Origin: Andalucia godoyi And28
Taxonomy: Eukaryota > Protista > Jakobida
Direction of reading: 5' to 3'
Length of the DNA stretch: 64,000 bases
Assembly (NCBI GenBank): GCA_009859145.1
Contig: VRVR01000003.1
Span: 469,121 to 533,120, forward strand
A program made the translations under genes and the position numbers. Shown here in pieces: positions 5,416 through 63,879 of this stretch. A model generated the notes under the pieces. The model saw only the letters and a list, made by a program, of their open reading frames with translations, was not told the origin of the DNA and searched no databases. Each line of letters opens with the position of its first letter. The first letter of the stretch is position 1.

Positions 5416-7968
5416 ATGAGGCACGTGCACAAGGAGGCGTACGGCGCAGCAGTTGCGTTCATCGTTTTTTGCTTTTGCGTCTGCTTTCCAAAGACAGCAG
5501 TTGCAACGTGTCCTATTCAGATTGAAGATCCAAGCTTCGAAACGCCGGTGCTTCCGATGACCTTCCTGCGGGAACGCTTTTCTTTTCTTGGAGCGTCTAC
5601 ACAGTATTGTCCGTCCAATGCGTCGCACATTGCTCTCTCGTTTGCGATCGACTCGACACTCTCCTGTGAATCATACCGCATTGCGCGACACGAAGGCAGT
5701 TATCATCGTGATAATGATCATCATGATGATAGTGGGTTTCAAGTTACTGTTTATGCATCAATTGAGTTGTGTCAGTCTGAGAATCCAAACTTGAGAAAAG
5801 GATCGGTGGAAACAACCGTGCTTGCGTTCTTGTATGGTGCGTATCGCACGTTGAGGGAAACTGGATTTGCGTTTTTGCATCCTTTCGATACCCTCGTTCC
5901 TGCGGCGCTCGGCATCAACGCAGATGGATCGATATCGCCCTTGATGACTCCAGGCGGGTCTGTTTTTGTCTCCTTTTCACACCCAGTTCGGTCGTACCAT
6001 CTGCACAGTATGCATCCGCTGGAGTACACTCCGTACTTCAATGGATTTGGTATCAACAACTCGAGTTTGCTGGTCACAGAAGACGACGGGTCTTTTGAGA
6101 AGGTTGCGTTTGCTGAATTTCCGTTGATATGTGAGTGGATGATTGTGATTCAAGCGAACCGATTTTCATGGGTTCTGTTGGAGGATGACTCATTCAAGCT
6201 GTTTGCACAGTCCCCGGAACGGATTGCACGACTTGCGAAACTGGTGGACATTGCGCATTCCTTTGGATTGCTTGTCGGGCTTGATGTGCCTGTCTTTTTC
6301 CAGCAGCAGCACTCATGGAGGTTGGTGCCAGGTTCGTACAAATCGACGGCTGACGCCGTCTCGCAGATGAAAGCTAGAGTGGACTATCTTCGTCAAGCGG
6401 ATTGGGACTTCTTGGAAACAGAAATGGGATCCTCCGAGTTCACACAAACCTCGGACGTGGAGATGGTTGCCTTGCTGAACGCAACGCAAATCTACATTGC
6501 GGACGAACCGACTGTTCGGCCGATCTCGTTGTGGGTGAAAGTACACTGTTCGCAAGGGCAAACTGCTCCCCACTACGGAAATATTGATTATAACTTCGTT
6601 GCCCAGTTTGCAGATCCGCGAGTTGTCTTGCTTCCTCACACTGTGCAGCCCTTTTCGCTGGATGATCCCACGTGGAATTCGTACGGAAACAGAAACTTCA
6701 CTTTCATGTTGGATTTTATGAAGTCGTTGCCTGCGGAGCGGCGATCCGTTTATTACGGAGAGACGGCGTATTGGGTGAACGACGATACGGCCACCGGGAT
6801 GTTTTGGCCGATTTACATTGATAGACGTGCACACGATCTGACGATCATCGAACAAGAGGTGCCCTACTGTCAAGGATTCCACACGTTCCATTCGGGTTTT
6901 GCGTGGGGATACAACCTGATTGATTATGCATTAATGTCTCTCTTTGATACGTCCATTCGTCCTCGTTTGAGCACTGCGACTGCAGAGCGAAACTGGGTGA
7001 AAGTTGTGTCTCCTATTTTTGGAAATACGCGAACCCAGTTGCTCACAGATCTGATTGACACGCAACGGGAGTGGTTTATCGAGAATGATGGCATGGCATA
7101 CGTTCAAGGCCAAGATACGTGGTCGGAAATCGGAGACGATATTGCGCACACCCACGAACAGCCACCGCGATCCTTGACCCCGTTGCCGCTGCTGATGTCG
7201 TCCAAGTTCGCAGAGGTGGACAAGAAGCCTCGTGATTTGTATATTCAGTCTGTGCGATCGTTGTTGACGAATATGAGGAGCGCTTTCACCAATGTGACGG
7301 ATCATATGAAAGCATTGGAAATGCCAGACGTTTCGCAGAAGCTGTCGTCCACTCCTGGGGTGTCCGTTGATTGGACTTCGCAGTGGAAGTTGGCTGCGCT
7401 TGTTTCCAAAGACTATTCGAGTTTTTGGTCCGATGTGTTGGATGGAACGTCCCTGCTGTCTCTCAGATCTTCTCAGATTGCCCTGATGTACGAGTCTTGC
7501 TTCACGCTGGAGTTTCCGACAGATGCATTGCACTCGATCTTTGTGGAAGCGACATCAATCGTTGAGCGTGGCCGTGATCGAATGAGAGTGGCGTATCCTC
7601 AACGTTTGTACGGATGGATTCCCTCAAATCCGACGTCATACAACCACATGTATCTATGGACTGCGGATTCTCTGTATTTTATGTGGAGAGACGTGTTGCG
7701 AATTCACGAATCTCTTGTTGTTCACGCTGGTGGGTCCGATGTGATTGCTTGGCTGTGGATTTGGTCTCCGTGCTTTCTGAACATGGTTGACCCTCTGCAG
7801 ATTGCAGGTCTTGGGGAAGGGGGATTTTCGACAGCATTTTCTGAGATTGTGTCGTGGGCCATCAAGGAGGAGCAACGCTGGCATGGGCATGGTGCCGAAC
7901 CGTTCCTGCGCTGCACAAGTGCTCCCGAGCAGGCATTCCCAGTCGCCGATTGGTCCATCTTCAAATAG
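5416..7968 (+). CDS. Secreted ~850 aa protein of unknown function, possibly glycoside-hydrolase-like
   Basis: ATG 5416 is followed by a signal-peptide-like stretch (AYGAAVAFIVFCFCVCF). The long ORF has globular composition and conserved-looking motifs YHLHSMHPLE, ETEMGSSEFT and YYGETAYWV. Confidence 0.75.
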   Translation: MRHVHKEAYGAAVAFIVFCFCVCFPKTAVATCPIQIEDPSFETPVLPMTFLRERFSFLGASTQYCPSNASHIALSFAIDSTLSCESYRIARHEGSYHRDNDHHDDSGFQVTVYASIELCQSENPNLRKGSVETTVLAFLYGAYRTLRETGFAFLHPFDTLVPAALGINADGSISPLMTPGGSVFVSFSHPVRSYHLHSMHPLEYTPYFNGFGINNSSLLVTEDDGSFEKVAFAEFPLICEWMIVIQANRFSWVLLEDDSFKLFAQSPERIARLAKLVDIAHSFGLLVGLDVPVFFQQQHSWRLVPGSYKSTADAVSQMKARVDYLRQADWDFLETEMGSSEFTQTSDVEMVALLNATQIYIADEPTVRPISLWVKVHCSQGQTAPHYGNIDYNFVAQFADPRVVLLPHTVQPFSLDDPTWNSYGNRNFTFMLDFMKSLPAERRSVYYGETAYWVNDDTATGMFWPIYIDRRAHDLTIIEQEVPYCQGFHTFHSGFAWGYNLIDYALMSLFDTSIRPRLSTATAERNWVKVVSPIFGNTRTQLLTDLIDTQREWFIENDGMAYVQGQDTWSEIGDDIAHTHEQPPRSLTPLPLLMSSKFAEVDKKPRDLYIQSVRSLLTNMRSAFTNVTDHMKALEMPDVSQKLSSTPGVSVDWTSQWKLAALVSKDYSSFWSDVLDGTSLLSLRSSQIALMYESCFTLEFPTDALHSIFVEATSIVERGRDRMRVAYPQRLYGWIPSNPTSYNHMYLWTADSLYFMWRDVLRIHESLVVHAGGSDVIAWLWIWSPCFLNMVDPLQIAGLGEGGFSTAFSEIVSWAIKEEQRWHGHGAEPFLRCTSAPEQAFPVADWSIFK

Positions 7969-8048
7969 CAGTGTGATAAAAAGTTTATAGCACCCCCCCC
8001 CCCCCCCTCTCTGCTGCACGAAGCGTACCAAATCTCGAAACAAATGTG

Positions 8049-11000
8049 CTAGCGACCAAAACCTCCCGAGCCTGATGGTTGTTGAGATCCAAACCCGCCC
8101 TGGGTTCCAAACGCCGAAAACCCGGTACCAAAACTGGATGGTTGCGAAGGCTGCTGACCAAACCCGCTCGGTTGCTGTCCGAAGGCACTTGGCTGCTGCC
8201 CAAATGCATTGGACTGCTGCCCAAACGTGCCCGACTGCGATCCGCTTGCCGGGATTGATGAATTGCCAGAGGCTTGCAAGAAGGCATTTCCGCTACCACT
8301 GAAGCCGGGATTTGCAGCGAATGACGCGAACCCAGCGCCAGCGGCGACTGCGGTGGATGTGGTGTTGTTTGTTGGTGCGGAAGAAACAGGACCGAACGGA
8401 TTCGATGAGCGCCCAATCTTCGCCGGTCCGCCGAAACCAGAGGATCCGAAAGCAGACGGTTGAGGACCCGCAGCGAACCCGGACAAAGAAGAAGATCCAG
8501 TGGCAGAGGAAGCACCCGAAGGCACAGCTGGTGGTGCTCCAAATGCAGCTGCCCCACTTCCAAAGCCAGAATTAGAGACGGAAGACAGACTACTTCCTTG
8601 CCCAAATGCAGAGAATGAAGACGGCTGCAGTACATTTTGCCCAGAAGAATTTTGGAACGGTGATTCCACTTGCTTCGGGGGAAGCGACGGAGCACCGAAA
8701 CCAAAACTGGACGTCTGCGCAAACGCATTCCCAGCACCCAATCCCTGTCCAGATGCAAGGGGCTGCAGGTCTGTATGTAAAGATAAGCCAAGTGCGAAGC
8801 CAGGCGCTGACAATCCTGTGGCTTGCGTATCAGCATGATTGGAGGCAACGGAGTCCTTTTTCGCCCCGGAAAGCTCAAGAGCGGGTTTCTTCTCGGGCTG
8901 ACCGAATGCCGCAGGCTGTGCAAAAGACAAGCTGGCAGGCGCATCCTTTTTCGCCCCGGAAAGCTCAAGAGCGGGTTTCTTCTCGGGCTGACCGAATGCC
9001 GCAGGCTGTGCAAAAGACAAGCTAGCAGGCGCATCCTTCTTCGCCCCGGAAAGCTCAAGAGCGGGTTTCTTCTCGGGCTGACCGAATGCCGCAGGCTGTG
9101 CAAAAGACAAGCTGGCAGGCGCATCCTTCTTCGCCCCGGAAAGCTCAAGAGCGGGTTTCTTCTCGGGCTGACCGAATGCCGCAGGCTGTGGGAATGTGAA
9201 AGCAGAGAAAACAGACGAATCAGCACTCGGATTCTTGGGCAGCAAGGTTTCGCCAGATATTTGAGACGAATTGACAACGGAGGGAGCAGAAAAATGGTCT
9301 TTTTTTCCTTGAGTGAATTCTGATGCAATCTTACTACCAGTTCCACTCGAGGTCGTTTCGGTCGCAATCGCTCCTCCAGAGGCATCGGGTTTTGAAGGAA
9401 AAGAGAAGACAGAATTTGTCGTCAAAGTCGTCGGAATCTTTGAGCTTTCAGCAATAGCATTGGTTTGTTGCGGCTGTGTATCAGTTGCCGTAGATTTCAA
9501 AAACTGTGGAGCGGGTGATTTCGTGCCCAACATGTTCGACCCTTCAACGGATTGTTTTTGAGGTCCAATCGGACCTGCGCCGGCTGTGGAGGCACTCCTT
9601 AAAGAAAGGGAAGTTTGCTGCCGTTTCTGGGAGGCTGAGTGCGAGTCACTGTTGGTGTCCTCCATCTTGCCGCCAGTAACGATGGAGGACGAGACATTGG
9701 CTTGCTTGGAGGAACCAGTCGGCTGCAAGGGCATCATTTGTTGGGAAACCTTCGCAATCACAATTGACGGTGACGACTGCACTATCTGTTGCACGCTATC
9801 CAGCCTACGCCAACGGGTTCGAGCCGGTGGAAGATCTGCACCTGCCGCACGTCCTACTGTCGCTGCAATGCGATCAACCTTTGAAATTTGTCCTGGAGAA
9901 AAGGTAGCTCTAGACGGAGAAGATGCATGCAGATTCAATAGCGACAGATCTGGCAGTCCGTACCTTGTCTTCCCACGAATTGATGCAGCCTTCTGGCGGG
10001 CCTGCCAGAGCTTGTCGACGCGAATCTTCAGCTCCTTGACGTAATCCAGCATATTGCGAGAAGATGAAAACCTGTCTTGAGCAATTCTGTACAACCTCGC
10101 AATCTTGTCTTCTTTTCGTTGAAGCGACAGGGCATCATTCGCGGGACAGCACAATTCCAGTTCAACAAAAATCTCATTGATCAAAGTTCGAAGACACGAA
10201 ACTCTCTCTGTCAACCGAAGAGAGTCATCAACAAACGCATGTTCAGCGGACGAGAAGCTGGATGCACGGATTCGCAAAGAAGAAACACGCGGAGCCTCCC
10301 GTTTTCGGAGCAGGTCTTCTAATTCTTGAAGACGACCCTCCAGATCCTCCACAGAAGAGGCTCGTAAAGGACCCATATTTTCGCCAGAGACATTGGCATA
10401 TGAAAGCTGGTGCTCACGAAGTTCGGCCTCGCACTTGACGCGTGTATCATGAATCAGCTGTAGCCCATTCGAAATAAATGCATCGACGATGTTTTCCAAA
10501 TCTCGAGGAGTGCTTCCAAAAGCACGTCCGAATTCAGCAGCAGCAGTCTTGCATGCTTCAAAACCCGGTGAAATCTTCACGTGCTGGGGAGCCGAAACAC
10601 TCTGCGAAGACGGCTTTTCGGTTTTTCTGCTGGACGACGTCGACGCTGCAAAAGACGGTAGCGGCTTCTGCTCGGCAGTGGTCCCAAGCGACAATGCTGG
10701 TTTCTGTTCTGCAGTCGTCCCAAACGACAATGCTGGTTTCTGTTCTGCAGTCGTCCCAAACGACCCAAACGGTTTCTGCTCGGCAGTCGTCCCAAACGAC
10801 CCAAACGGTTTCTGCTCGGCAGTCGTCCCAAACGACAATGCTGGTTTCTGTTCTGCAGTCGTCCCAAACGACAATGCTGGTTTCTGTTCTGCAGTCGTCC
10901 CAAACGACCCAAACGGTTTCTGCTCGGCAGTCGTCCCAAACGACAATGCTGGTTTCTGTTCTGCAGTCGTCCCAAACGACAATGCTGGTTTCTGTTCTGC

Positions 11001-22610: not shown

Positions 22611-23155
22611 AATTCTCTCCCCTTCCTTCTTCGATGATCAGCAAGATTTTTTAAAAAAAATATGAAAGAATAGTAAGGATTCCCGATTCCAGTACTGCTG
22701 TAAGAACAACACGGCGGCACTTGGATTCTGATACGAAGACTGGGAAAAAAAGGCACGCAAGCTCAGGAAAGTAACGTGTGTTTTAATTTTAAAAAACCAA
22801 CAAAACCAAAACCCAAAAACCCAAAACAACCAATTAATGAATGAATCGTTTGGTGATTATGACGCGCGTATACTGCTTGGTCTTGGCGAATGGTTAGCCG
22901 TTGGCTGTACAGCCGGAGAAGCCTCGCGTGGCTTTTGTCGGCGTGTGTTGGGGTCGGGGGGGATTGTCAGCCATGTCATTATGACAAAGAAGTGAAATCG
23001 AGCGAACGGACACTGCCTCCCCTCCACAGGGTGCTTGAGTCTCTGAGCCATGCACAACAGATTTCTTTGCCGTATTTCAGGGTTTTTTGCAGTGACGGTT
23101 ACGATGGTTGGCGAGTGAGGAAGCGAGGGCGTGGGATCTGCGAGGGATTTGGACG

Positions 23156-24220
23156 ATGCATCGAGTGAAGAACCGGCTGCCGAGCATCAGCGGCCAAAAG
23201 TCATTTCGGCTGGCTGTGCAAGATCCGTCTCGGGTCCGGGTGCATTCGGAGATCGCAAGCATCACGTGTCGAAGGAGGAAAGCGACGGATGCGAGTCGTG
23301 TTTGCGGCAGACTGTTTGGCATTGTATCGAATTACGTCCGGACCAAGGAGTGCGGGTCAGTGCTGCAGGAATCAGAACAGTTCCAGCGCTTGCATGAAAA
23401 GCAATCTGATAATATATTTAATATTGATAACAAGGATCATTCACACAGGACAGCAACTACGGCAGCAGCGGCGGTGGCGCCGTCTGTGAGCATGAAGAGG
23501 ATGATTGCAGAGTGGAGGCAGGATGAAACGGTGGATGCGATAATGTGTCTTCCGCGGGTCAGTGTCGTCACTTCGAAAAAAGCGGTTTCTGCAAAGGCTG
23601 TGGAAAGGAATCGCACAAAGAGACGTGTCCGAGAAGCACTCCGGTTGTTGTGGAAGCGGCAGTGTGAGAGCTTCAATCTCCCAACTCAACCGGCAGAGAC
23701 GGCGTGCTCGGCACCGGTGAACGCAACTCCTTTGAGAAGTACAGATGTGCTTGCGGAAATCGATGCAGCACCTCCTGTGCAGTTGCACAAGCAGCGTGCA
23801 TTGTTGCACAGGAAAGAAGTGCTCTTTGTTCGAAACTGCGACTACCTCGTCAGCATGTCGTCGACGATTGCAGACGTGCCAATGGAAAGGCTATCCAGTC
23901 TTCTTGAAAACTCTCTCCGCTCGATCGCTCACCAGCTTTCCAAAGAACGGAATCCTCCGTCTCAACACGCCCACAATTCCGGCATTGGTGGCAGAGGGCA
24001 AGTCCGTGGCAAGGGACACGCCGAGACTCAGGAGGGCCATCAACGCACCCGCGGCAACAGTGCACAAGAATCCCGCATCCGACCACAGGGCGTACCACGA
24101 AGTCCAAACGGGGACGGAAGTGACAGTGGACGTGGAGGTGACAGTGCTCCCCCAAAAGGCGATTCGCGGAAAGACACAGCCAGTAAGAATCCAGAGCACC
24201 CCAGTTGTCGAGGCAAATGA
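23156..24220 (+). CDS. rnpA: Bacterial-type RNase P protein (RnpA)-like with insertions
   Basis: RVSVVTSKKAVSAKAVERNRTKRRVREALR is the RNR motif. N-terminal KNRL..F and C-terminal DYLVSM..IADVPMERLSSLLENSL are also present. Confidence 0.75.
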   Translation: MHRVKNRLPSISGQKSFRLAVQDPSRVRVHSEIASITCRRRKATDASRVCGRLFGIVSNYVRTKECGSVLQESEQFQRLHEKQSDNIFNIDNKDHSHRTATTAAAAVAPSVSMKRMIAEWRQDETVDAIMCLPRVSVVTSKKAVSAKAVERNRTKRRVREALRLLWKRQCESFNLPTQPAETACSAPVNATPLRSTDVLAEIDAAPPVQLHKQRALLHRKEVLFVRNCDYLVSMSSTIADVPMERLSSLLENSLRSIAHQLSKERNPPSQHAHNSGIGGRGQVRGKGHAETQEGHQRTRGNSAQESRIRPQGVPRSPNGDGSDSGRGGDSAPPKGDSRKDTASKNPEHPSCRGK

Positions 24221-53816: not shown

Positions 53817-54061
53817 GCAGCAGTTCTGTAAATGTTCAGCGTGCGTATTTCACCCGTTCTTCTCTGCTTGACAAGTCACGTTCGTGTCGTTCCGAGAGCC
53901 ATGTTCACAGCCTGCGAGCGTTTGCCGTTGTTCTGCTGTAGTCCATTTGACTTTATATCTCTTTCTTGACAGTCCCCGGGTGTCTTAGTTGTTGTGTGTC
54001 TTGTGTTTTGTTGCTGCTGTTGCAGCAGTTGTTGCCGAATTTTTCGTTCCACATCGGAACA

Positions 54062-55516
54062 ATGGCATCCTTTTCGAGATGGCTCGGTCTGCTGGTTGCA
54101 TTCCAATGCGCCGTCGTAATTGCGGTCGACGTGTGCAGTAGGTCTCCCCGATGGTATGGACACCCGCGACACCCGGTGACCGGCGGTCCACTGGATTCGC
54201 CATCGACAATCGTCGTGTGGGGCCATCCTCAAGCTGGCGGGTTCGTACCGTCGTCGATTGGCGGATCTGTCCACGTGCTGAGCGACGTGGTGTACATCCG
54301 ATCGACGTTTCTGTCATTTGCTGTTCTATTCTCGAACGGCTCCGTCCTGTCCTTTGGAGCACCGGGCTCGGGGGGAGATTCTTCGTCGGTGCTGCAAGAC
54401 TTGTCGTCAGACATCGTCATGTTGCAGTCTACAAGCGGGGCGTATGCTGCCTTGAAGAAGGACGGCCGGGTTGTTACGTGGGGAAACACAAGAGACGGCG
54501 GAGACAGTACTGCGGTCAAGGATCGGCTGTTCGGCATCGTCCGAATTTATTCGAACAACCACGCGTTTGCCGCCGTGAATGCGCTTGGACAGGTCGTCAC
54601 GTGGGGCTATTCGGAAGGAGGAGGAGATTCGTCGCCGGTGCATGCGGACTTGCATGATGTTGACACAATTTACTCCACCGTTGATGCATTTGCTGCTGTG
54701 AAGAAGACTGGCGCCGTGATCACCTGGGGCCGGTCTGCCACTGGTGGAAACTCCTCTGTTGTGTCCAAGGATCTGCAAGGCGACGTGACATTCATTGCCG
54801 CAACAACCGGGGCCTTCGCTGCGCTGAAGAGAAGCGGAGCCGTTGTGACTTGGGGTCTGGCTCCGAAGGGCGGGAGCGTCTCTGGCGTTCAAGGAATAGC
54901 TGCCATCTGCTCGACTGCGTCTGCATTTGCCGCAATCAGCAAGGATGGGCGGGTGGTATCTTGGGGCGACGGCAACGGCGGAGGCCAAATCCCGTCCTCG
55001 TCTCTGGAATTGCTGTCTACGGGAGTTGTGTCCATTGCTGCGTCTGCAAGTGCGTTCGCAGCAGTGAGGAACGACGGACATGTTGTGTCGTGGGGAAACG
55101 TACACAATGGTGGAGATCAGTCCGCAGTGGACAGTAAACTGCGTGGGATTGCGATGGTACGGGCAACGGACGCAGCGTTTGCAGCGGTGCAAGGCAGAAC
55201 GGGCGCTGTGTTCACTTGGGGAAACCCTGCATTTGGTGGTGACAGCGTGACAGTCGGGGACCGGTTGCAATCGGGCATTCGAGCCGTGTTTTCAAATGTG
55301 GCAGCCTTCATCGGCATCCATGAAAATGGAACCGTTGTGACCTGGGGAAAGGCGGACGCGGGTGCAAACAGTGCATTCGTGCAGCATTTCTTGACTGATA
55401 TTCAAAGCGTGTTTGCAAGTCGAACGGCATTCATTGCTGTACAGCAGAAGAGTTATTTGCAGCAGACTATGGAGTGGTTTACGAATATGCAAGGTCTCAT
55501 CGCGGAGTTTTGGTAA
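54062..55516 (+). CDS. Secreted RCC1-like beta-propeller repeat protein
   Basis: Signal peptide followed by about 10 repeats of ~37-40 aa, STxxAFAAxKxxGxVVTWGxxxxGGDSSxV. Confidence 0.85.
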   Translation: MASFSRWLGLLVAFQCAVVIAVDVCSRSPRWYGHPRHPVTGGPLDSPSTIVVWGHPQAGGFVPSSIGGSVHVLSDVVYIRSTFLSFAVLFSNGSVLSFGAPGSGGDSSSVLQDLSSDIVMLQSTSGAYAALKKDGRVVTWGNTRDGGDSTAVKDRLFGIVRIYSNNHAFAAVNALGQVVTWGYSEGGGDSSPVHADLHDVDTIYSTVDAFAAVKKTGAVITWGRSATGGNSSVVSKDLQGDVTFIAATTGAFAALKRSGAVVTWGLAPKGGSVSGVQGIAAICSTASAFAAISKDGRVVSWGDGNGGGQIPSSSLELLSTGVVSIAASASAFAAVRNDGHVVSWGNVHNGGDQSAVDSKLRGIAMVRATDAAFAAVQGRTGAVFTWGNPAFGGDSVTVGDRLQSGIRAVFSNVAAFIGIHENGTVVTWGKADAGANSAFVQHFLTDIQSVFASRTAFIAVQQKSYLQQTMEWFTNMQGLIAEFW

Positions 55517-55528
55517 CATTTTCCTCCC

Positions 55529-55537
55529 TTCTTTCTT

Positions 55538-55614
<77 letters not shown>

Positions 55615-55656
55615 GTCTCTCTCTGTCTCTCTCTCTCTCTCTCTCTGTCTCTGTCT
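55529..55656. repeat. (CT)n/(CTGT) compound microsatellite
   Basis: Directly visible. Confidence 0.95.
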
Positions 55657-56212
55657 CCTGGAATTTGGGATGCCAGTCTTGGAAAAGAAAAAAGATTTCC
55701 GGGTCATATCGTAGAAGAAGAGTGTGAACAAAAAATGACCTGCCAGGAGTTGGTTGGATGCGTGTGAACCAAGCTGCGAGACGCTGAATTTCCAATCAAT
55801 GCATCTCAAGTATTATGCATGCTTCAGAGAAGATCGCCAAAACCAAATACCTCCGTCTATCCTTTCAATGCTTTGGCGTATCAATTCTTTGAGAGAGTAA
55901 AAACACAAGTAAAAAAAGCATTCGCAAACGCGCGCGCGCGCGCACCCACCCACCCACACAACAAAGAAAGAAAGAAAAATAAATAAATAATGAACTGAAA
56001 AACACATGCGATAGGAGAACATACACAACATCACTGGCTTCTGTTAATTCGCAGCAGAAAGAGTCTTTGCGGCTCTTTCACAGGGACTGCATGCTGAAAA
56101 AGAAGAAGAAAAGAAAAAGTCCAACGGCGATGGCATGATTTTTCTTGTATTTTCAATCCCTCTCGCCACGAGGCCGGGGCTCCCGACCTTCATCTTCACT
56201 CTCTCTTCCTTT

Positions 56213-56968
56213 TTAGGTACGCCTGTTCACAGTGGATGCAACGCACTGGCTTTCCATGTCATCAAAAAGCAATATATTAAGGCGAAATGCATGTTGCGCC
56301 TCCTGAGCAATCAAGCTGCGCATTCTCTCATCGCAGCAGTTGCCGATTTCATCAAGAGTCTGTTTGTATTCCTTCACGAACGATCTTACTGATGAAATAC
56401 TCGAAAAATTGTAAAACGCTAGACCCTTTCGATCCTCTACGTTCAAGTCGAACGTTTCGCAAACATGTCTGGCAATAATCTGCCCCCCAAACAAATCTCC
56501 GAGGTATCGAACGTATGCATGCGCAACGAGACACAGCGCAGAGTCCTTTGACGACGCAAGATCAGATAGCCTCTGCGAATACTGTCGTGTGGAACTCAAT
56601 TCCACATAAGGAGCGGCATTTACATTGCTGGCTGTCCGCTCTTCACGAAAAAAAGCAATGTCATTTTCGAGAGCGCATGTGCGATGTAGCGCGTCAAAAT
56701 CAATTGCCACACACTCGGATCGTTCTTCTCTAGCAACCTGTAAAGAGCGCTCTAGAGATCCATAGATGCATTTTAACTGAAACAAATAAGCAAGATACAC
56801 TCCTGCAGTAATACCGAGTCTCTCCGTTCCGGCGTGCTGGCCTTTGCCGCCAAGCAGCCGCTTCATGAACTGGTGGCTTTCTGCCTCGGCGTGCACGTCT
56901 GCAGTTGCCAGCTTCAGCAGGGTTGAAAGCGACGTCTGTTTGTCGTTACTGTCCGGAAGCGTACTCAT
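56213..56968 (-). CDS. Heme oxygenase (soluble, 251 aa)
   Basis: LKLATADVHAEAES with proximal His, HRTCALENDI, LVAHAYVRYLGDLFGGQII, GLAFYNF and EAQHAFRLN. No C-terminal TM anchor. Confidence 0.93.
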   Translation of the reverse strand: MSTLPDSNDKQTSLSTLLKLATADVHAEAESHQFMKRLLGGKGQHAGTERLGITAGVYLAYLFQLKCIYGSLERSLQVAREERSECVAIDFDALHRTCALENDIAFFREERTASNVNAAPYVELSSTRQYSQRLSDLASSKDSALCLVAHAYVRYLGDLFGGQIIARHVCETFDLNVEDRKGLAFYNFSSISSVRSFVKEYKQTLDEIGNCCDERMRSLIAQEAQHAFRLNILLFDDMESQCVASTVNRRT

Positions 56969-57695
56969 CCTCATCAGTCCTGACAGGTTTGTCGGGTGCC
57001 AGCGAGGAAAAAGAAAGAATTCTTGAGAGCAAGACTTCCCTTTCAGCTCACCTCCAAATTGAGCGGCAAATCCAGCGAGGCGGCGGGCGAGCTCGAAGCG
57101 CCGTCTTCTTCTTTTCTCTTTTCTCTTTTCTCTTTTCTTTTCTTTTTTGTTTCCTATGAAATTTTCACGTGGTTCGCGGAGCATTGTGGTTCCACTGACC
57201 ACCAACTCGACGACGCCACCGAAAAGGAAATGCGTCGGATCAGAACATCCGATTCGTGAAAGCAAACTAGACGCACAATTGTCGAGTTGACTTCCACGAG
57301 AGCACCGGAAGGCGCCTTGGCTTGAATCAGCAGTGACGTGTCCGCGCAACTGGTCTCCTTGGAAGTTTCTGACATGGTGACGTGCATGCCTATCTTCCGA
57401 CGGGGCCTGTTTTGCACTTCTCATCGCACAAGCGACAAAGTGCAAGTATGGAGTTGTTTCTGTATACAACAAACTCGGTTGCCACTCCTTTTCTTTAACA
57501 GAAGGGACCCCCCCAAGAAAACGTCCTCAAGTCTATGAAACAATAAAAGGAAAGAAGGAAAAATAAGAGCTCGTAGTTTTTCTTTTTGTGCACCCCGCAT
57601 CTTATTGTGTGCCTTCTCTTTTCTTTTCTTTTCTCTCTTCTTTTCATTGATAAACTTTGTAAAATTGTTTGCTTTTTGTTTCTCATCGCCAGAAG

Positions 57696-60600
57696 ATGCA
57701 GCCTTCCTCCGCGTTCATAAGCTCTTGTGAAACGGAGCCGTTGCCTCTTTCCGGAAAGATTCTGGACTACGGAGTGCTATTCGGGATCGCTTACCATGTG
57801 CACGAATTAGGCGACAATTCTGCATTGATCATGAATGTTTCCGACAATGTGGAAAGATTGTTCGGCTTCTCGGTCAATCAACTGCTTCATCGCCCGCTGT
57901 CGACGATCATCCGTTCCATGGAAATTTTCGGTGAAGAGCGCACGACGGATCTCTCCGTACTGTACAAGAAAACGCTTGCTTATGCAGGCGAAACATCACG
58001 ACTGGGGCCGATAACGGTTCATGTAAAGACCCTGAAGGGTGGAAGCTCGGAGGACGGTCTGGATAGTCTAGAATTTCTGGGATTCGCGTACATGTCCAAT
58101 GGCATTGTGATCATAGAGCTGGACTGCGCAAGCATGGCGCATTCGCTCATCAGTGCCTCTGCCCCCTGGCCCTCGAACTCTCTGCAGTACGTAGAACTGT
58201 ACAGAAGAGCAATTACAACCATGAACGAGCGAATGTCGAGTTGCAAGACACTTCATGATGTCTGTACCGTTGTTGGCGCACAAATCTTTGATTTTCTCGG
58301 CTGCGATCGCTGCATGGTTTACGAGTTTGACCTAGCCGATGAGTCTGGTGATGTGATTTGTGAATGGAAGCGCGATTCCGTGAAAACGTCGTATTATGGG
58401 CTCCACTTTCCGGCCTCTGACATTCCTCTTATAGCTCGCACATTGTACGTCAAGAACCCGATTCGATGCATTCCCGATGTGGATTTGAAGACGTCTCGCA
58501 TTCTGCCAATATCGTCGACAACGGATCTCTCGAACAGTTTCTTGCGAAGTGTATCGCCGGTGCACATTCAGTATTTAAGGAACATGGAGGTGCGGGCTTC
58601 CATGTCGCTTAGCATTGTCGTGGAGGGTCGTTTGTGGGGGCTGATTTCCTGCCACCATTACACGCCCTTCTATCCTCCTTTGCATGTCCGTTCACTATGC
58701 GAGTGCCTTTCAAAACTGGCTTCGACGACCATATCAGAAAAGCTCCGACAGCTGCAAATATCAACATGGAACGCGGACTTTCGTCTTGTTCGAACCGTGC
58801 TATCCAAGATGGCTTTTGATGTTTCGGATGATGGCGGAAATTCCTCGCATCGAGGATTGTCCCAGTGGCTCCAGTATTCCCGCAGAACGCTGATGAATCG
58901 CTTTCGCTCTCCACTGATGGTCCTCCGAGTTGCGGGAACTGTGTTTGTGTCGGGAGAGTGTCCTTCCGTGGATCCATTCTTGGAGGTTTGTACATGGCTG
59001 CGATCACGGTCTGTTCCACAGTCCTCTGTCCAGTTCTCCTTTGCTTCTCCTGTTGCAGACATACTGCTTCCGCCTGTTCAGACAGTGGAGAGCTTAGCGA
59101 AGGAGTTCCCTCCACGCCTGCCGTTCAACCTGCGATGCAAGACGGAAGGTGCAGGGGAAGCGGCGGTCGCAGGCGTCATATTCATACCTCTCTCTCCTGA
59201 TCGTTCGGATTTCCTTGCGTTTTTCCGCCCCGAAAAGGATCGTTTGATCAAATGGCTCGGAAATCCGCGAAAAATAGAGGATGACAATGGAATCTTAACA
59301 CCGAGATCGTCTTTTGAATCCTACTTGCAGACCATTGTGGGGCACTGTGAACGCTGGGATGTGGAGGACGTGGACATGTGTCGAATGATGCAGGAGGGGC
59401 TCTTTTCACAGATCCAGAATTTCAGCGCGCAAATCGAAGAACGACGCGCTCTCAAGAGCGAGTACAAAAGACTCGCCACTGCAGAGAGCGATAAGCTGAG
59501 GAAAGTCTTCCTGTCCCATCTGTCTCATCAGATGCGAACGCCTTTCAATACTGTCTTGGATACACTGAAGGACCTCGCGCAAGAACAAGAAGTACCGCAG
59601 GAAAATGTCCGGCTGGCGTACTCTTCCGCAACGTCAGCTTTGCTGCTGATCGACAACCTGTTAGAACTGCTTCGCCTGGAGACCTCTTTAATGGAGCTCT
59701 CCGAACGAGAGGCCTTTCTTCCTTCGCAGTTTGAAAGAGTATCTGAAATATTGCAAGTGGCAGCAGACCGTCGCAGCGTCCGTCTCTTCCAGTCTTTGCA
59801 TCCAGATATTCCGACGGTTGCCATATTTGATGTGGAGCGTCTCAATCAAGTATTGATGAACGTTCTTGGGAACGCCATCAAGTATACAGAATCCCGCGGA
59901 TCGGTCTTCATGAACGTGTCCATGCTAAAACTTATCGACCCGTCGTTCATTGAGGAAGAAAATCAAGCAACAATTGTGATCAGTGTGCGAGACGAAGGGA
60001 TCGGAATGGATGCTCATGTGTTAGATAATTTGTTCAACCCGCTGTTCCCAAATGACGCGGATGTGTCGAAGCGGAAGCGAGGCGGATCGTGCTTGGGACT
60101 CGCGCTCTGCAAACAGATCATCGACCGAATGAACGGCAGCATCGTCGTTGACAGCTCGATTGGAGCCGGCTCCGAGTTCATTATCCGCATACCGCTGCGC
60201 TTGCCTGTTGGAAAACCTGTGCGCACGTTGCGAGATGACTATCTTGTGCTCCACAACAAGATTGGATGGCTCCGCGAAAACTATCCTGTAGTTTTGGTGC
60301 TTGCGGGATCATTTTTCGACACCATAGCATGGGTGCTGCGATTCCTTGGGTTTGAAGTGTTTCAATGCATTGGCCTGCCGTCGCTGCGGAACCGGCTTCA
60401 GTATGAACGGAAGTACCTGATCCTCTTGGAAGACGAGAGTCTCTGTCATGACCTTCAGTCCATGTCAGAAACATTACAGTGTTTGCAGATAGTGAAAGAA
60501 TCCGCATGGAGAAACAGTTACGTTGTTCGCATCCGGTCGCAACATACGTCGAAGATAGCAGACCGAGAGAACAACTCCGGAGCACTGGGGAGTATGCAAG

Positions 60601-61445
60601 ACAGCTGTGCATCATTTACGGATTCGGAAAGCTCGTCCTCATCATCGTATGCTGCTTCCAGCATCGCGTCACCTTCTCTTGGCTCTGTGTCTTCGAATGC
60701 AACATCGTCGTCGAAATCGCTCTCAAGCAAGAGCGGCAGTGGAAATGCCTTCAGTGACGGAATTTCATTTTCGGAGGATCTTCTTCCGCTTGTCGAGGCT
60801 CGATTCGACGAATCCATCCTGCGCGTGGGTGCCGTGGCTGCGGGAATGTTTGAAAAGGTCGGTCGTTTTTCTGATGCGCTGAAGATGTGTAAGACTTACA
60901 CTATTTTTAAGCCGCTGGCATGCAAGCCGCTGGAAGATACTCTGATGGCAATTCAAAATGATGGAATTCACAATATGACTTTATCTGTGCACATCGATAC
61001 GGGCGCGGGATACCATGATCCAACTTCTGTCGACTCTCCAACAGTCGTGATTGAGCTGCCCGCGTGTGCCCTTATTGCAGAAGACAATCCGCTGAACGCT
61101 CGTGTTCTTGCGAAGCATCTCTCCAAGCTCGAATGGGAATACGATGTTGCATGTGACGGAAGCGAGGCTCTTCAGCTCTTCACGGATTCTCCGGAGAAGT
61201 ACTCTGCGATTTTGATGGATTGCTTCATGCCCGAGATGGACGGTTTTGAAGCGACAACGAAGATTCGCCAGGAAGAAAAACTGATCTCTGAAACTCATCA
61301 TATACCGATCATTGCTGTCACCGCGGATGTGCTGTATGAGACTCGAAAAAGGTGTTTTGAAGTTGGAATGGACGACTTTTTATGCAAGCCTGTGCACAAG
61401 GAAACCCTTGGAGCAGTTCTTAAAAAGCACAAATTGAAAAGATAG
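57696..61445 (+). CDS. Biliverdin-type phytochrome hybrid histidine kinase (PAS-GAF-PHY-HisKA-HATPase-pseudoREC-REC)
   Basis: SCETEP (N-terminal Cys), FPASDIP, LRSVSPVHIQYL, LWGLISCHH, PRSSF, SHQMRTP, NAIKYT, DEGIG, and REC motifs AEDN, ILMDCFMPEMDG and FLCKP. Confidence 0.95.
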   Translation: MQPSSAFISSCETEPLPLSGKILDYGVLFGIAYHVHELGDNSALIMNVSDNVERLFGFSVNQLLHRPLSTIIRSMEIFGEERTTDLSVLYKKTLAYAGETSRLGPITVHVKTLKGGSSEDGLDSLEFLGFAYMSNGIVIIELDCASMAHSLISASAPWPSNSLQYVELYRRAITTMNERMSSCKTLHDVCTVVGAQIFDFLGCDRCMVYEFDLADESGDVICEWKRDSVKTSYYGLHFPASDIPLIARTLYVKNPIRCIPDVDLKTSRILPISSTTDLSNSFLRSVSPVHIQYLRNMEVRASMSLSIVVEGRLWGLISCHHYTPFYPPLHVRSLCECLSKLASTTISEKLRQLQISTWNADFRLVRTVLSKMAFDVSDDGGNSSHRGLSQWLQYSRRTLMNRFRSPLMVLRVAGTVFVSGECPSVDPFLEVCTWLRSRSVPQSSVQFSFASPVADILLPPVQTVESLAKEFPPRLPFNLRCKTEGAGEAAVAGVIFIPLSPDRSDFLAFFRPEKDRLIKWLGNPRKIEDDNGILTPRSSFESYLQTIVGHCERWDVEDVDMCRMMQEGLFSQIQNFSAQIEERRALKSEYKRLATAESDKLRKVFLSHLSHQMRTPFNTVLDTLKDLAQEQEVPQENVRLAYSSATSALLLIDNLLELLRLETSLMELSEREAFLPSQFERVSEILQVAADRRSVRLFQSLHPDIPTVAIFDVERLNQVLMNVLGNAIKYTESRGSVFMNVSMLKLIDPSFIEEENQATIVISVRDEGIGMDAHVLDNLFNPLFPNDADVSKRKRGGSCLGLALCKQIIDRMNGSIVVDSSIGAGSEFIIRIPLRLPVGKPVRTLRDDYLVLHNKIGWLRENYPVVLVLAGSFFDTIAWVLRFLGFEVFQCIGLPSLRNRLQYERKYLILLEDESLCHDLQSMSETLQCLQIVKESAWRNSYVVRIRSQHTSKIADRENNSGALGSMQDSCASFTDSESSSSSSYAASSIASPSLGSVSSNATSSSKSLSSKSGSGNAFSDGISFSEDLLPLVEARFDESILRVGAVAAGMFEKVGRFSDALKMCKTYTIFKPLACKPLEDTLMAIQNDGIHNMTLSVHIDTGAGYHDPTSVDSPTVVIELPACALIAEDNPLNARVLAKHLSKLEWEYDVACDGSEALQLFTDSPEKYSAILMDCFMPEMDGFEATTKIRQEEKLISETHHIPIIAVTADVLYETRKRCFEVGMDDFLCKPVHKETLGAVLKKHKLKR

Positions 61446-62352: not shown

Positions 62353-63879
62353 ATGATGGCTGCACGGTCCAACACAGCTTGGAGCGTGGCCTTTGTGGTG
62401 TGCGTGTGCGTGTGCGTGTGCTGCACGTCAAACGTGCTGCTGTTTGCAGATGCAGCGCATGTGTCTCCGTCTCGACACCTGGGCTCCGTGCACTCGTCCC
62501 GCCCTGCCCGCGCATCCTCCGCTGGCAGCAGCGCACCAGCCGCAGCAAACGGACACTTTGTGATGAGCTACTGGACAGACTGGTCCATCTACGCATCGAC
62601 GCCTGTTCCCACGCAGCCGTACCCGCTCCCTGGATCCATCAACGCTGACGGGTCCGTGGCTGCGAACGCCGATCTGACTGCGAAGCTCGAACACATGAAT
62701 GCGCTTGCATATGCGTTCCTGCAGGTGGGTCAGGACGGCACGACGTACTTCAACGATCCGAACGCGGATCTTCGGGTGGCCCAGTCGTTTGCAAACTACG
62801 ACGCTCTGTTCGGCGCATCTGGTCTCTGCACGGTGGACTCGGCAATCTGCAGCACTGCCCAGACGCCAGCCGCCTGGGGCCGCGGAAACTTCCAGGCCTT
62901 CATGGGTCTCCAGAATTCCAAGGGCACTCTCAAAAAGCTGATCTCCGTTGGTGGATATGCACACGACGCGTCATTTCTCAGTGCGTTCCGGAACCCCGAC
63001 AGGTTCGCATCGACCGTCAAGCTGATCCTGGACAAAACAGCGATGGATGGCATCGATCTTGACTTTGAGCCGGTGTCCATGACCCCCGATCTCGCATCAC
63101 AGTACGCGGCGTTGGTCGCCAAGGTGCGCAGTGCGATCGGCAGCCGGTACATCATCTCGCTCGCCGTACTCTCGGGCCCGTCCTGGCTGCAGACCGTCGG
63201 AGCCGACAACTGGAAAATCCTGTCCGCGAACGCAGATTTCATCGACCTGATGACCTACGACTTTCATGGCGGGTTCGACGCCTCGGGACCCGTCGGGGCA
63301 ACCGGCTACCTCACGAGCCTGACGGCCGACGCGGCATCGCCGTACAACCCGGACTTTTCCGTCCAGCAGTCCGTGCAGTCGCTCTTGGGGATGGGAGTGC
63401 CGTCGCAGAAGATCGTCGTGGGAGTGCCGGCGTACGGCCGCATGCTGACCGGGGTTGCCGCCGGATCGAACTTTGGTCTCTTTGAGAAGTTCGCGGGCGT
63501 GGCGCAGGGCAACCAGGACGAGCCGTCGTGCTCCACGGATCCGCGGTCGGGCATCGCATGCTCGGGATCCTTCACGTACGCATACCTCGCGCAGCTCGTT
63601 GCCGCAGGCACGTTTGTGCAGCACGAGTGGTACGACGGCGGCGTGGTCTCGGGGGTGTGGGCGTATCACGACGGACAGTGGACACCCGCGGGCACCCAGG
63701 CGTCATACTCGCAGGCATTTGTCTCGTACGCTGATGCATCGCTTGTCCAGAGCTACGTGAGCTACGTGCAGTCGCAGTCTCTGGGAGGAATGCTGATGTG
63801 GGATGTTCACGGGGACGTCACTCCAGGAACCTCTGGCAGCCAGTCCTCGCTACTCCAGGTCATGTCCCAGCTATGCTAG
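62353..63879 (+). CDS. Secreted GH18 chitinase
   Basis: Signal peptide, YWTDWSIY, SVGG, catalytic DGIDLDFE, MTYDFHG, VGVPAYGR and GGMLMWD. Confidence 0.93.
   Translation: MMAARSNTAWSVAFVVCVCVCVCCTSNVLLFADAAHVSPSRHLGSVHSSRPARASSAGSSAPAAANGHFVMSYWTDWSIYASTPVPTQPYPLPGSINADGSVAANADLTAKLEHMNALAYAFLQVGQDGTTYFNDPNADLRVAQSFANYDALFGASGLCTVDSAICSTAQTPAAWGRGNFQAFMGLQNSKGTLKKLISVGGYAHDASFLSAFRNPDRFASTVKLILDKTAMDGIDLDFEPVSMTPDLASQYAALVAKVRSAIGSRYIISLAVLSGPSWLQTVGADNWKILSANADFIDLMTYDFHGGFDASGPVGATGYLTSLTADAASPYNPDFSVQQSVQSLLGMGVPSQKIVVGVPAYGRMLTGVAAGSNFGLFEKFAGVAQGNQDEPSCSTDPRSGIACSGSFTYAYLAQLVAAGTFVQHEWYDGGVVSGVWAYHDGQWTPAGTQASYSQAFVSYADASLVQSYVSYVQSQSLGGMLMWDVHGDVTPGTSGSQSSLLQVMSQLC

Follow-up and report, generated by a model that had tools for sequence, protein, structure and literature searches.

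The question raised by the locus described here is why a heme oxygenase (HO) gene and a phytochrome gene should stand head to head in the nuclear DNA of a flagellate without plastids. The locus lies in a 64-kb stretch of Andalucia godoyi contig VRVR01000003.1, which is referred to below as the window. The preferred answer, held with a probability of roughly 0.72, is that the two genes form a long-resident nuclear light-sensing pair, in which HO makes biliverdin for the adjoining biliverdin phytochrome of this heterotrophic jakobid. The photoreceptor system is of a known kind, found in a new eukaryotic lineage and with a gene arrangement that is unusual for eukaryotes. The pairing itself is real and, it appears, unreported.

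The two genes are uninterrupted open reading frames (ORFs) on opposite strands and span positions 56213-61445 of the window. The HO gene (56213-56974, minus strand) encodes 253 aa from the annotated methionine at 56974. An alternative start at 56968 gives 251 aa, the public model beginning two codons earlier (MRMSTLP...). The phytochrome gene (57696-61445, plus strand) encodes 1249 aa without need for an intron. The gap between the start codons is 721 bp from the annotated HO methionine and 727 bp from the second one. The first-pass annotation, made from the sequence alone, had placed two divergent genes about 730 bp apart, and both ORFs were found with the coordinates, orientation and spacing that it gave.

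The phytochrome comprises PAS, GAF, PHY, HisKA and HATPase_c domains, a lineage-specific region of ~280 aa, and a receiver (REC) domain. The matches to GAF, PHY, HisKA, HATPase_c and Response_reg all exceed the curated Pfam cut-offs. The PAS domain (PAS_2; residues 11-142, positions 57726-58121, plus strand) is divergent, and was detected only when the first 168 residues were scanned alone. With 19.4 bits (E 0.0018) it stays below the cut-off of 21.4, covers profile positions 1-104 of 107, and begins exactly at Cys11 (codon 57726-57728), to which biliverdin is predicted to attach. The GAF domain (residues 186-342, positions 58251-58721, plus strand; Pfam GAF E 2e-14) carries Y209, D242-I243-P244, Y251, R257, R284, S287, V289, H290, Y293, S302/S304, and H320/H321. 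The PHY domain (residues 396-574, positions 58881-59417, plus strand; Pfam PHY E 3e-18) was aligned to domain 2 of 6bap. Its tongue contains W520-L-G, which is WGG in most relatives, and an intact PRxSF motif, P536-R-S-S-F540.

The best solved relatives of the phytochrome are bacteriophytochromes, with Stigmatella aurantiaca BphP2 in first place (E 4e-54). The segment ISSCETEP aligns with LTNCDREP of BphP2, which puts Cys11 in the biliverdin-binding column, and the dual-Cys cyanobacterial phytochrome FiDCB aligns likewise from residue 8. In an alignment of 45 bacterial, cyanobacterial, and fungal relatives, this column is Cys in at least 90% of sequences. Opposite the GAF segment LRSVSPVH, BphP2 has LRSVSPIH and FiDCB has LRSVSPCH, and Val289 therefore occupies the column of the canonical GAF Cys. 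The phytochrome keeps 29/29 invariant columns of the 45-sequence alignment, including Y209, D242-I243-P244, Y251, R257, R284, S287, H290, Y293, W520, P536, S539, and F540. An AlphaFold2 (AF2) model of residues 1-600 has a mean predicted local distance difference test score (pLDDT) of 86 and a predicted template modelling score (pTM) of 0.84, with a pLDDT of about 89-96 in the PAS region. Foldseek matches the model to PAS-GAF-PHY crystal and cryo-EM structures of myxobacterial, Agrobacterium, Rhodopseudomonas, Deinococcus, and Cph1 phytochromes at target-normalised TM scores of 0.77-0.86. Assignment to the biliverdin (bacteriophytochrome-like) type is well supported by these features, and such a protein would be expected to attach biliverdin covalently and to photoconvert reversibly between its red-absorbing (Pr) and far-red-absorbing (Pfr) forms.

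The output half begins with a histidine kinase (positions 59502-60200, plus strand), in which Pfam places HisKA at residues 603-663 and HATPase_c at residues 712-835. HisKA has the H-box SHQMRTP with His611, and HATPase_c has the N box GNAIKYT, the G1 box DEGIGM, and the G2 box GGSCLGL. Among the sequences compared, the closest kinase regions are those of hybrid phytochromes from bacteria and cyanobacteria. The REC domain (residues 1126-1241, positions 61071-61418, plus strand; Pfam Response_reg E 5e-21) contains E1129-D1130 (AEDNP), the phospho-acceptor D1175 (LMDCFMP), T1209 (AVTAD), and K1231 (CKPV). With all kinase boxes, and with the receiver's acidic pocket, Thr, and Lys, the phytochrome is, by its motifs, a hybrid two-component histidine kinase.

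The lineage-specific region lies between the ATPase and the receiver (residues 841-1120, positions 60216-61055, plus strand) and matches only the Andalucia paralogs. No Pfam match was found in it at E<=10. Its first ~100 residues have beta-alpha repeats (VVLVLAG...), and these are followed by a Ser-rich linker and a conserved DGISFSEDLLPLV block. The AF2 model of this region together with REC has a pLDDT of 40 overall and of 57-77 over the beta-alpha part. A degenerate pseudo-receiver may be present at the start of the region, which is a hint only because AF2 confidence is low there. The first-pass annotation had read the protein as a 1249-aa PAS-GAF-PHY-kinase-receiver phytochrome and its N-terminal Cys and GAF Val as the biliverdin-type pattern. 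The domain matches bear out the first point, with PAS_2 slightly below its cut-off, and the alignments of Cys11 and Val289 to BphP2 and FiDCB bear out the second.

The partner protein matches the Pfam family Heme_oxygenase (PF01126) with E 4e-36 over 203/204 profile positions. Human HO-1 is its top PDB match (E 7e-26), followed by rat HO-1, bacterial HmuO-type enzymes, and cyanobacterial enzymes. The proximal His28 aligns with human His25, and GDLFGG aligns with human GDLSGG; the distal-helix motif RYLGDLFGGQ occupies residues 156-165. An alignment of 14 sequences shows H28, G159, D160, G163, and G164 without variation. An exhaustive search gave 31-42% identity to mixed eukaryotic and prokaryotic enzymes, and identity to family members from animals, actinobacteria, cyanobacteria, and metagenomes is 31-41%. 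The protein has neither an N-terminal extension nor a C-terminal tail, and ends 10 residues past the HO fold. A 19-residue hydropathy scan reached a Kyte-Doolittle maximum of 1.29 and found no 19-residue hydrophobic stretch. Together with the early end of the chain, this indicates that a membrane anchor is absent. The enzyme described earlier as a 251-aa anchorless HO is thus recovered, at 251 aa from the second methionine and at 253 aa as annotated. By sequence it is a canonical, soluble HO of the HO-1/HmuO type. The residues that contact the heme propionates in human HO-1 are partly substituted in the alignment, and alpha-regiospecific cleavage to biliverdin IX-alpha would follow from family membership only.

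In the proposed mechanism, soluble HO, acting in the cytosol, would cleave heme to biliverdin IX-alpha. The phytochrome would then attach biliverdin autocatalytically at Cys11, ahead of the divergent PAS domain, and hold it in the fully conserved GAF pocket. Red or far-red light would flip the bilin and refold the PHY tongue. The change in the tongue would alter both the autophosphorylation of His611 and the transfer of phosphate to Asp1175 in the receiver of the same protein. From there, the signal would presumably pass onward to a relay of histidine phosphotransfer (HPt) and response-regulator proteins encoded elsewhere in the genome.

The phytochrome is one of at least three paralogs in A. 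godoyi, the others being ANDGO_06876 (66% identity) and ANDGO_07399 (69%). Both bear automatic 'phytochrome' names in EukProt, and each public model seems to be missing one end. Cys11 is conserved in ANDGO_06876. In place of PRxSF, both diverged paralogs carry PKxSF, and SVSSVH occurs in one of them, which makes the HO-linked phytochrome the most canonical of the three. A further protein, ANDGO_06031 (P0137), has 438 aa, of which 436/438 are identical to the C-terminus of the phytochrome (window positions 60129-61442), and a 283-aa model (P0138) is identical to its last 283 residues. These two models point to a nearly identical second copy, to a haplotig, or to an alternative gene model at another place in the assembly.

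A second A. godoyi HO was found neither by a word-indexed search nor by an exhaustive HMMER search; the HMMER evidence for a single HO is the weaker because that search lists one representative per 50%-identity cluster. With one HO, 3-4 phytochrome genes, and at least 8,803 proteins (from the ID numbering), the chance that the single HO adjoins a phytochrome gene is about 7-9e-4, a post hoc figure that assumes random gene placement. Adjacency by chance is unlikely. The sole detectable HO adjoins the most canonical paralog, and for this reason the adjacency was most likely kept or recruited for chromophore supply, possibly with common regulation. It probably reflects selection for, or retention of, a supply of chromophore with its receptor. 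A search of metagenomes for close relatives, made with Andalucia-specific peptide patterns, returned only one weak match, in the kinase region.

The divergent intergenic region (positions 56975-57695, 721 bp) is the presumed promoter region of both genes. It contains pyrimidine-rich (TCTTTTC)n tracts at 57100-57150 and 57610-57650, and the ORF list shows no convincing ORF inside it. A shared promoter may lie here, and co-regulation of the two genes from it is plausible. The A. godoyi genome is compact and almost intron-free, and divergent pairs are frequent in it, being the norm (PMC7050145). Since such pairs are common and this spacer is long, the head-to-head orientation alone says little on co-regulation.

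The locus is nuclear DNA of the non-photosynthetic jakobid A. godoyi. The EukProt proteome of this species contains exact copies of the phytochrome, of HO, of the downstream GH18 protein, and of an NPR2-like protein, which agrees with the flagellate host that the first-pass annotation had supposed. Within the 64 kb, eukaryotic genes occur on both sides, namely those for tubulin, an RFC subunit, Rft1, E2, a SKI2/MTR4-like helicase, and NPRL2; the window further encodes an ABCG transporter. Neither gene departs in GC content or codon usage from the range of its neighbours. The best matches of HO and phytochrome are mainly prokaryotic, which could point to bacterial contamination or a chimeric assembly, but the eukaryotic flanks and the matching codon usage exclude this origin and leave it a negligible probability. 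Three diverged phytochrome paralogs in the same proteome, and an identity to any bacterium of at most about 36%, also speak against it. Any foreign origin of the two genes is old.

The ancestry of the phytochrome is less clear than its type. After the paralogs, its best matches are bacterial, at 27-30% identity, and the top ones are hybrid PAS-GAF-PHY-HK-REC proteins from metagenome-assembled genomes (MAGs) of Myxococcales and Polyangiaceae. In a third protein-database search, the query was padded with a second copy of the C-terminus, which raised the length filter and admitted fungal phytochromes; only residues 1-600 were scored. Fungal phytochromes score below the top bacterial matches (150-171 vs 203 bits), and the mean identity of the photosensory module (PSM) is 27% to fungi and 29% to bacteria. 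Four BphP-like loci on viral contigs, at 27-38% identity, are no nearer than bacteria. The protein with the highest bacterial score, P0003 (1152 aa, on a 545-kb contig), is bacterial and has two tandem PAS-GAF(-PHY) modules separated by a histidine kinase; its score is the highest only because both modules add to it.

A quick maximum-likelihood (ML) tree was built from 66 bacterial, metagenomic, fungal, and Andalucia sequences under LG+C20+F+G4 with posterior mean site frequencies (PMSF). The three Andalucia phytochromes form a clade with a stem of 2.2 substitutions/site (2.2-2.4 across trees). This clade joins the fungal clade, whose stem is 1.8, with an approximate likelihood-ratio (SH-aLRT) support of 89, and the program flags that long branches meet. 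When fungi are removed, the Andalucia clade stands next to a long metagenomic branch with 72% support. Shared indels between Andalucia and fungal PSMs amount to loop-length coincidences, none of them informative. The sister relation to fungi is a possible long-branch artefact. A myxobacterial donor, considered from the best PDB and named database matches, is not supported in the tree; the approximately unbiased (AU) test allows the grouping of Andalucia phytochromes with myxobacterial hybrids (p 0.325).

HO has a different setting. In its ML tree, HO and two metagenomic sequences make up a supported trio (97/86). One of the two (P0144) lies on a 16-kb eukaryote-like contig with a Fungal_trans gene and without a phytochrome. 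The trio falls outside the opisthokont HO-1, cyanobacterial/dinoflagellate, actinobacterial, and BphP-linked HO clades. The AU test allows its union with the BphP-linked clade (p 0.185) and with opisthokont HO-1 (p 0.40), and a FastTree analysis of 188 HOs is poorly resolved. The 80 best GTDB loci for HO belong to Actinomycetota or Cyanobacteriota (29-36% identity), and 0/80 of these most similar bacterial species-genome HOs have a phytochrome within 8 kb. No bacterial donor for HO was identified among them.

Linkage of bphO and bphP is seen directly in bacteria, as the first-pass annotation had held it to be typical there. In a Myxococcales MAG (SECP01000022.1, L001), bphO stands upstream of the best named bacterial match of the phytochrome in an operon. 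Here the gene model of a hybrid PAS-GAF-PHY-HK-REC protein (5567-9333) overlaps an upstream gene for a 194-aa bphO-type HO, and a gene for a KaiC/RecA-like ATPase follows directly. The Myxococcales bphO product is 25% identical to A. godoyi HO (E 0.02). HO-BphP adjacency also occurs at the metagenomic HO matches P0123 and P0124, and so at 3/3 of the bacterial or metagenomic loci read. Two fungal loci (Saitoella, Aspergillus) have no HO within 10 kb of the phytochrome gene, and no paper was found that describes such clustering; as the same annotation had expected, the arrangement looks unusual in a eukaryote.

Its further suggestion of a co-transferred unit finds no support so far, although the AU test rejects nothing. 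Phylogenies of both proteins against bacterial and fungal homologues, part of a check that it had proposed, support no common bacterial donor; discordant ancestry is equally unproven. Co-transfer may have occurred, but without positive phylogenetic support. In its full form, this explanation holds that one bphO-bphP operon came from one bacterial donor, was later inverted to a divergent pair, and then had its phytochrome duplicated. It is unlikely, even though linkage prevails in the bacterial relatives examined, chance adjacency is improbable, and the AU test allows both groupings that it needs. The HO lies outside the BphP-linked clade and with P0144 instead, the Myxococcales bphO is distant, the most similar bacterial HOs have no phytochrome nearby, and the phytochrome has no supported bacterial sister. 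Both genes are also fully ameliorated, and any transfer is therefore ancient and untraceable with present sampling. Another, improbable reading takes the sister relation of the Andalucia and fungal phytochromes as genuine. On that reading, very early eukaryotes (Discoba and Opisthokonta, near the root) would already have had a biliverdin phytochrome with an HO partner, and the Andalucia pair would be a relic of the original bacterial bphO-bphP locus. If true, this would add to the 'bacterial-like' ancestral traits known in the jakobid A. godoyi.

Several observations weigh against a dedicated light-sensing pair. HO may do no more than degrade heme as a housekeeping enzyme of the cell, and the spacer of 721 bp is long in a compact genome where divergent pairs are common. 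In the phytochrome, the PAS domain is divergent with a sub-cut-off Pfam score, EPIHIPGxIQPHG is replaced by EPLPLSGKILDYG, and the tongue WGG is WLG; a change in the PAS domain or the tongue could alter assembly or photochemistry. One alternative is a chance or secondary adjacency, with an ordinary heme-catabolic HO of eukaryotic or independent ancestry and no coupling beyond cell-wide biliverdin. The membership of HO in the canonical HO-1/HmuO family, human HO-1 as its top PDB match, the permitted sister relation to opisthokont HO-1, and a nearest relative on a eukaryote-like contig without a phytochrome fit such an origin, as do the frequency of divergent neighbours in the genome and the lack of HO linkage in two fungal genomes. 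This explanation is rather improbable, given the low odds under random placement and the position of HO beside the paralog whose chromophore and tongue motifs are the most canonical. Another alternative is that the protein is no red/far-red photoreceptor, and that drift of its PAS/knot part has left a light-independent hybrid kinase or one with another tetrapyrrole or another attachment chemistry. The PAS_2 score, the knot motif ILDYG in place of IQPHG, the WLG tongue, and the very long clade stem are consistent with that. It is nonetheless very unlikely, as all invariant pocket and tongue residues are kept (DIP, R284, H290, H320/321, PRxSF), Cys11 is shared with ANDGO_06876, and the model of the entire PAS-GAF-PHY core is confident.

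The light-sensing pair preferred here can be compared with known systems. Neighbouring bphO and bphP genes are known in bacteria such as Deinococcus and Pseudomonas, and for Stigmatella BphP2. The Andalucia phytochrome has the same PAS-GAF-PHY core, N-terminal Cys, lack of a GAF Cys, biliverdin pocket, histidine-kinase output, and adjoining HO gene, and its C-terminal REC makes it a hybrid like those of myxobacteria and cyanobacteria. In contrast, the Andalucia pair resides in a eukaryotic nuclear genome, and its genes lie on opposite strands with separate 5' ends and not in a same-strand operon. Its HO belongs to a different subclade from the linked HOs sampled, the PSM is only about 28-36% identical to BphPs, the PAS domain is divergent, and an extra region of ~280 aa precedes REC.

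Fungal phytochromes (Fph), such as Aspergillus FphA and Neurospora PHY-1/2, receive biliverdin from HoxA/HoxB. They share with the Andalucia protein a heterotrophic eukaryotic host, the biliverdin-type Cys, and the PAS-GAF-PHY-HK-REC order. Their N-terminal extension before the Cys is 190-280 residues long, with PSMs that start at residue about 189-278, whereas that of Andalucia has 10, and the Andalucia gene is HO-linked, unlike those at the two fungal loci.

The A. godoyi HO shares fold and catalytic residues with HO-1/HmuO enzymes and differs from this family in its place in a small orphan clade. It lacks the endoplasmic reticulum anchor of animal HO-1 and, unlike plastid, dinoflagellate, and fungal HOs, has no transit or extension sequence. 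Fungal HOs are larger and mitochondrion-associated (PMC8447599). The phytochromes of diatoms and brown algae (Dph) and of slime moulds are eukaryotic and biliverdin-type, with HK-REC outputs and a presumed bacterial ancestry (PMC4422448, PMC10813442). They occur in stramenopiles and amoebozoans and not in Discoba, and are likened here by literature descriptions only.

Phytochromes have been listed for plants/algae, fungi, slime moulds, heterokonts, and bacteria (PMC10813442). A eukaryote-wide survey of histidine kinases shows no phytochrome among Excavata (PMC6324907), and the A. godoyi genome paper mentions neither phytochrome nor HO (PMC7050145). A search of the literature outside subscription-only papers found nothing that links Andalucia or jakobids to phytochromes, heme oxygenase, or photoreceptors. 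A biliverdin-type phytochrome family in a jakobid adds Discoba to the phytochrome-bearing groups, and this bacterivorous, plastid-free flagellate probably senses red/far-red light. With the chromophore enzyme beside the photoreceptor, the pair is a compact two-gene unit that is directly testable in E. coli, and it could be a source of new near-infrared biliverdin-binding scaffolds. The long branch and the possible fungal link bear on whether eukaryotic biliverdin phytochromes have a single origin or arose by repeated bacterial transfers.

Other features of the window are of minor interest. The neighbour on the HO side is an RCC1-repeat protein (53966-55516, plus strand) with a hydrophobic N-terminus and no obvious link to light sensing. 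Between this RCC1-like gene and the 3' end of the HO gene lies a long (TC)n/(TCTCTG)n microsatellite (55506-55681), which yields spurious SLSLSL/RERERE ORFs on both strands. An ORF for a bacterial-type RNase P protein (RnpA, PF00825) occupies 23108-24220 on the plus strand. It overlaps the Rft1 gene on the opposite strand, and the real RnpA gene is therefore shorter than the ORF. This is the mitochondrial RnpA that had already been reported for A. godoyi (PMC7050145). Directly downstream of the phytochrome is a GH18 chitinase-like gene (62353-63879, plus strand), whose codon usage is among the most deviant. Its GC content is 0.62 and its third-position value (GC3) 0.76, whereas the window has about 0.51 and 0.55. 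The gene may have been acquired more recently, or it may encode a secreted enzyme that is strongly expressed.

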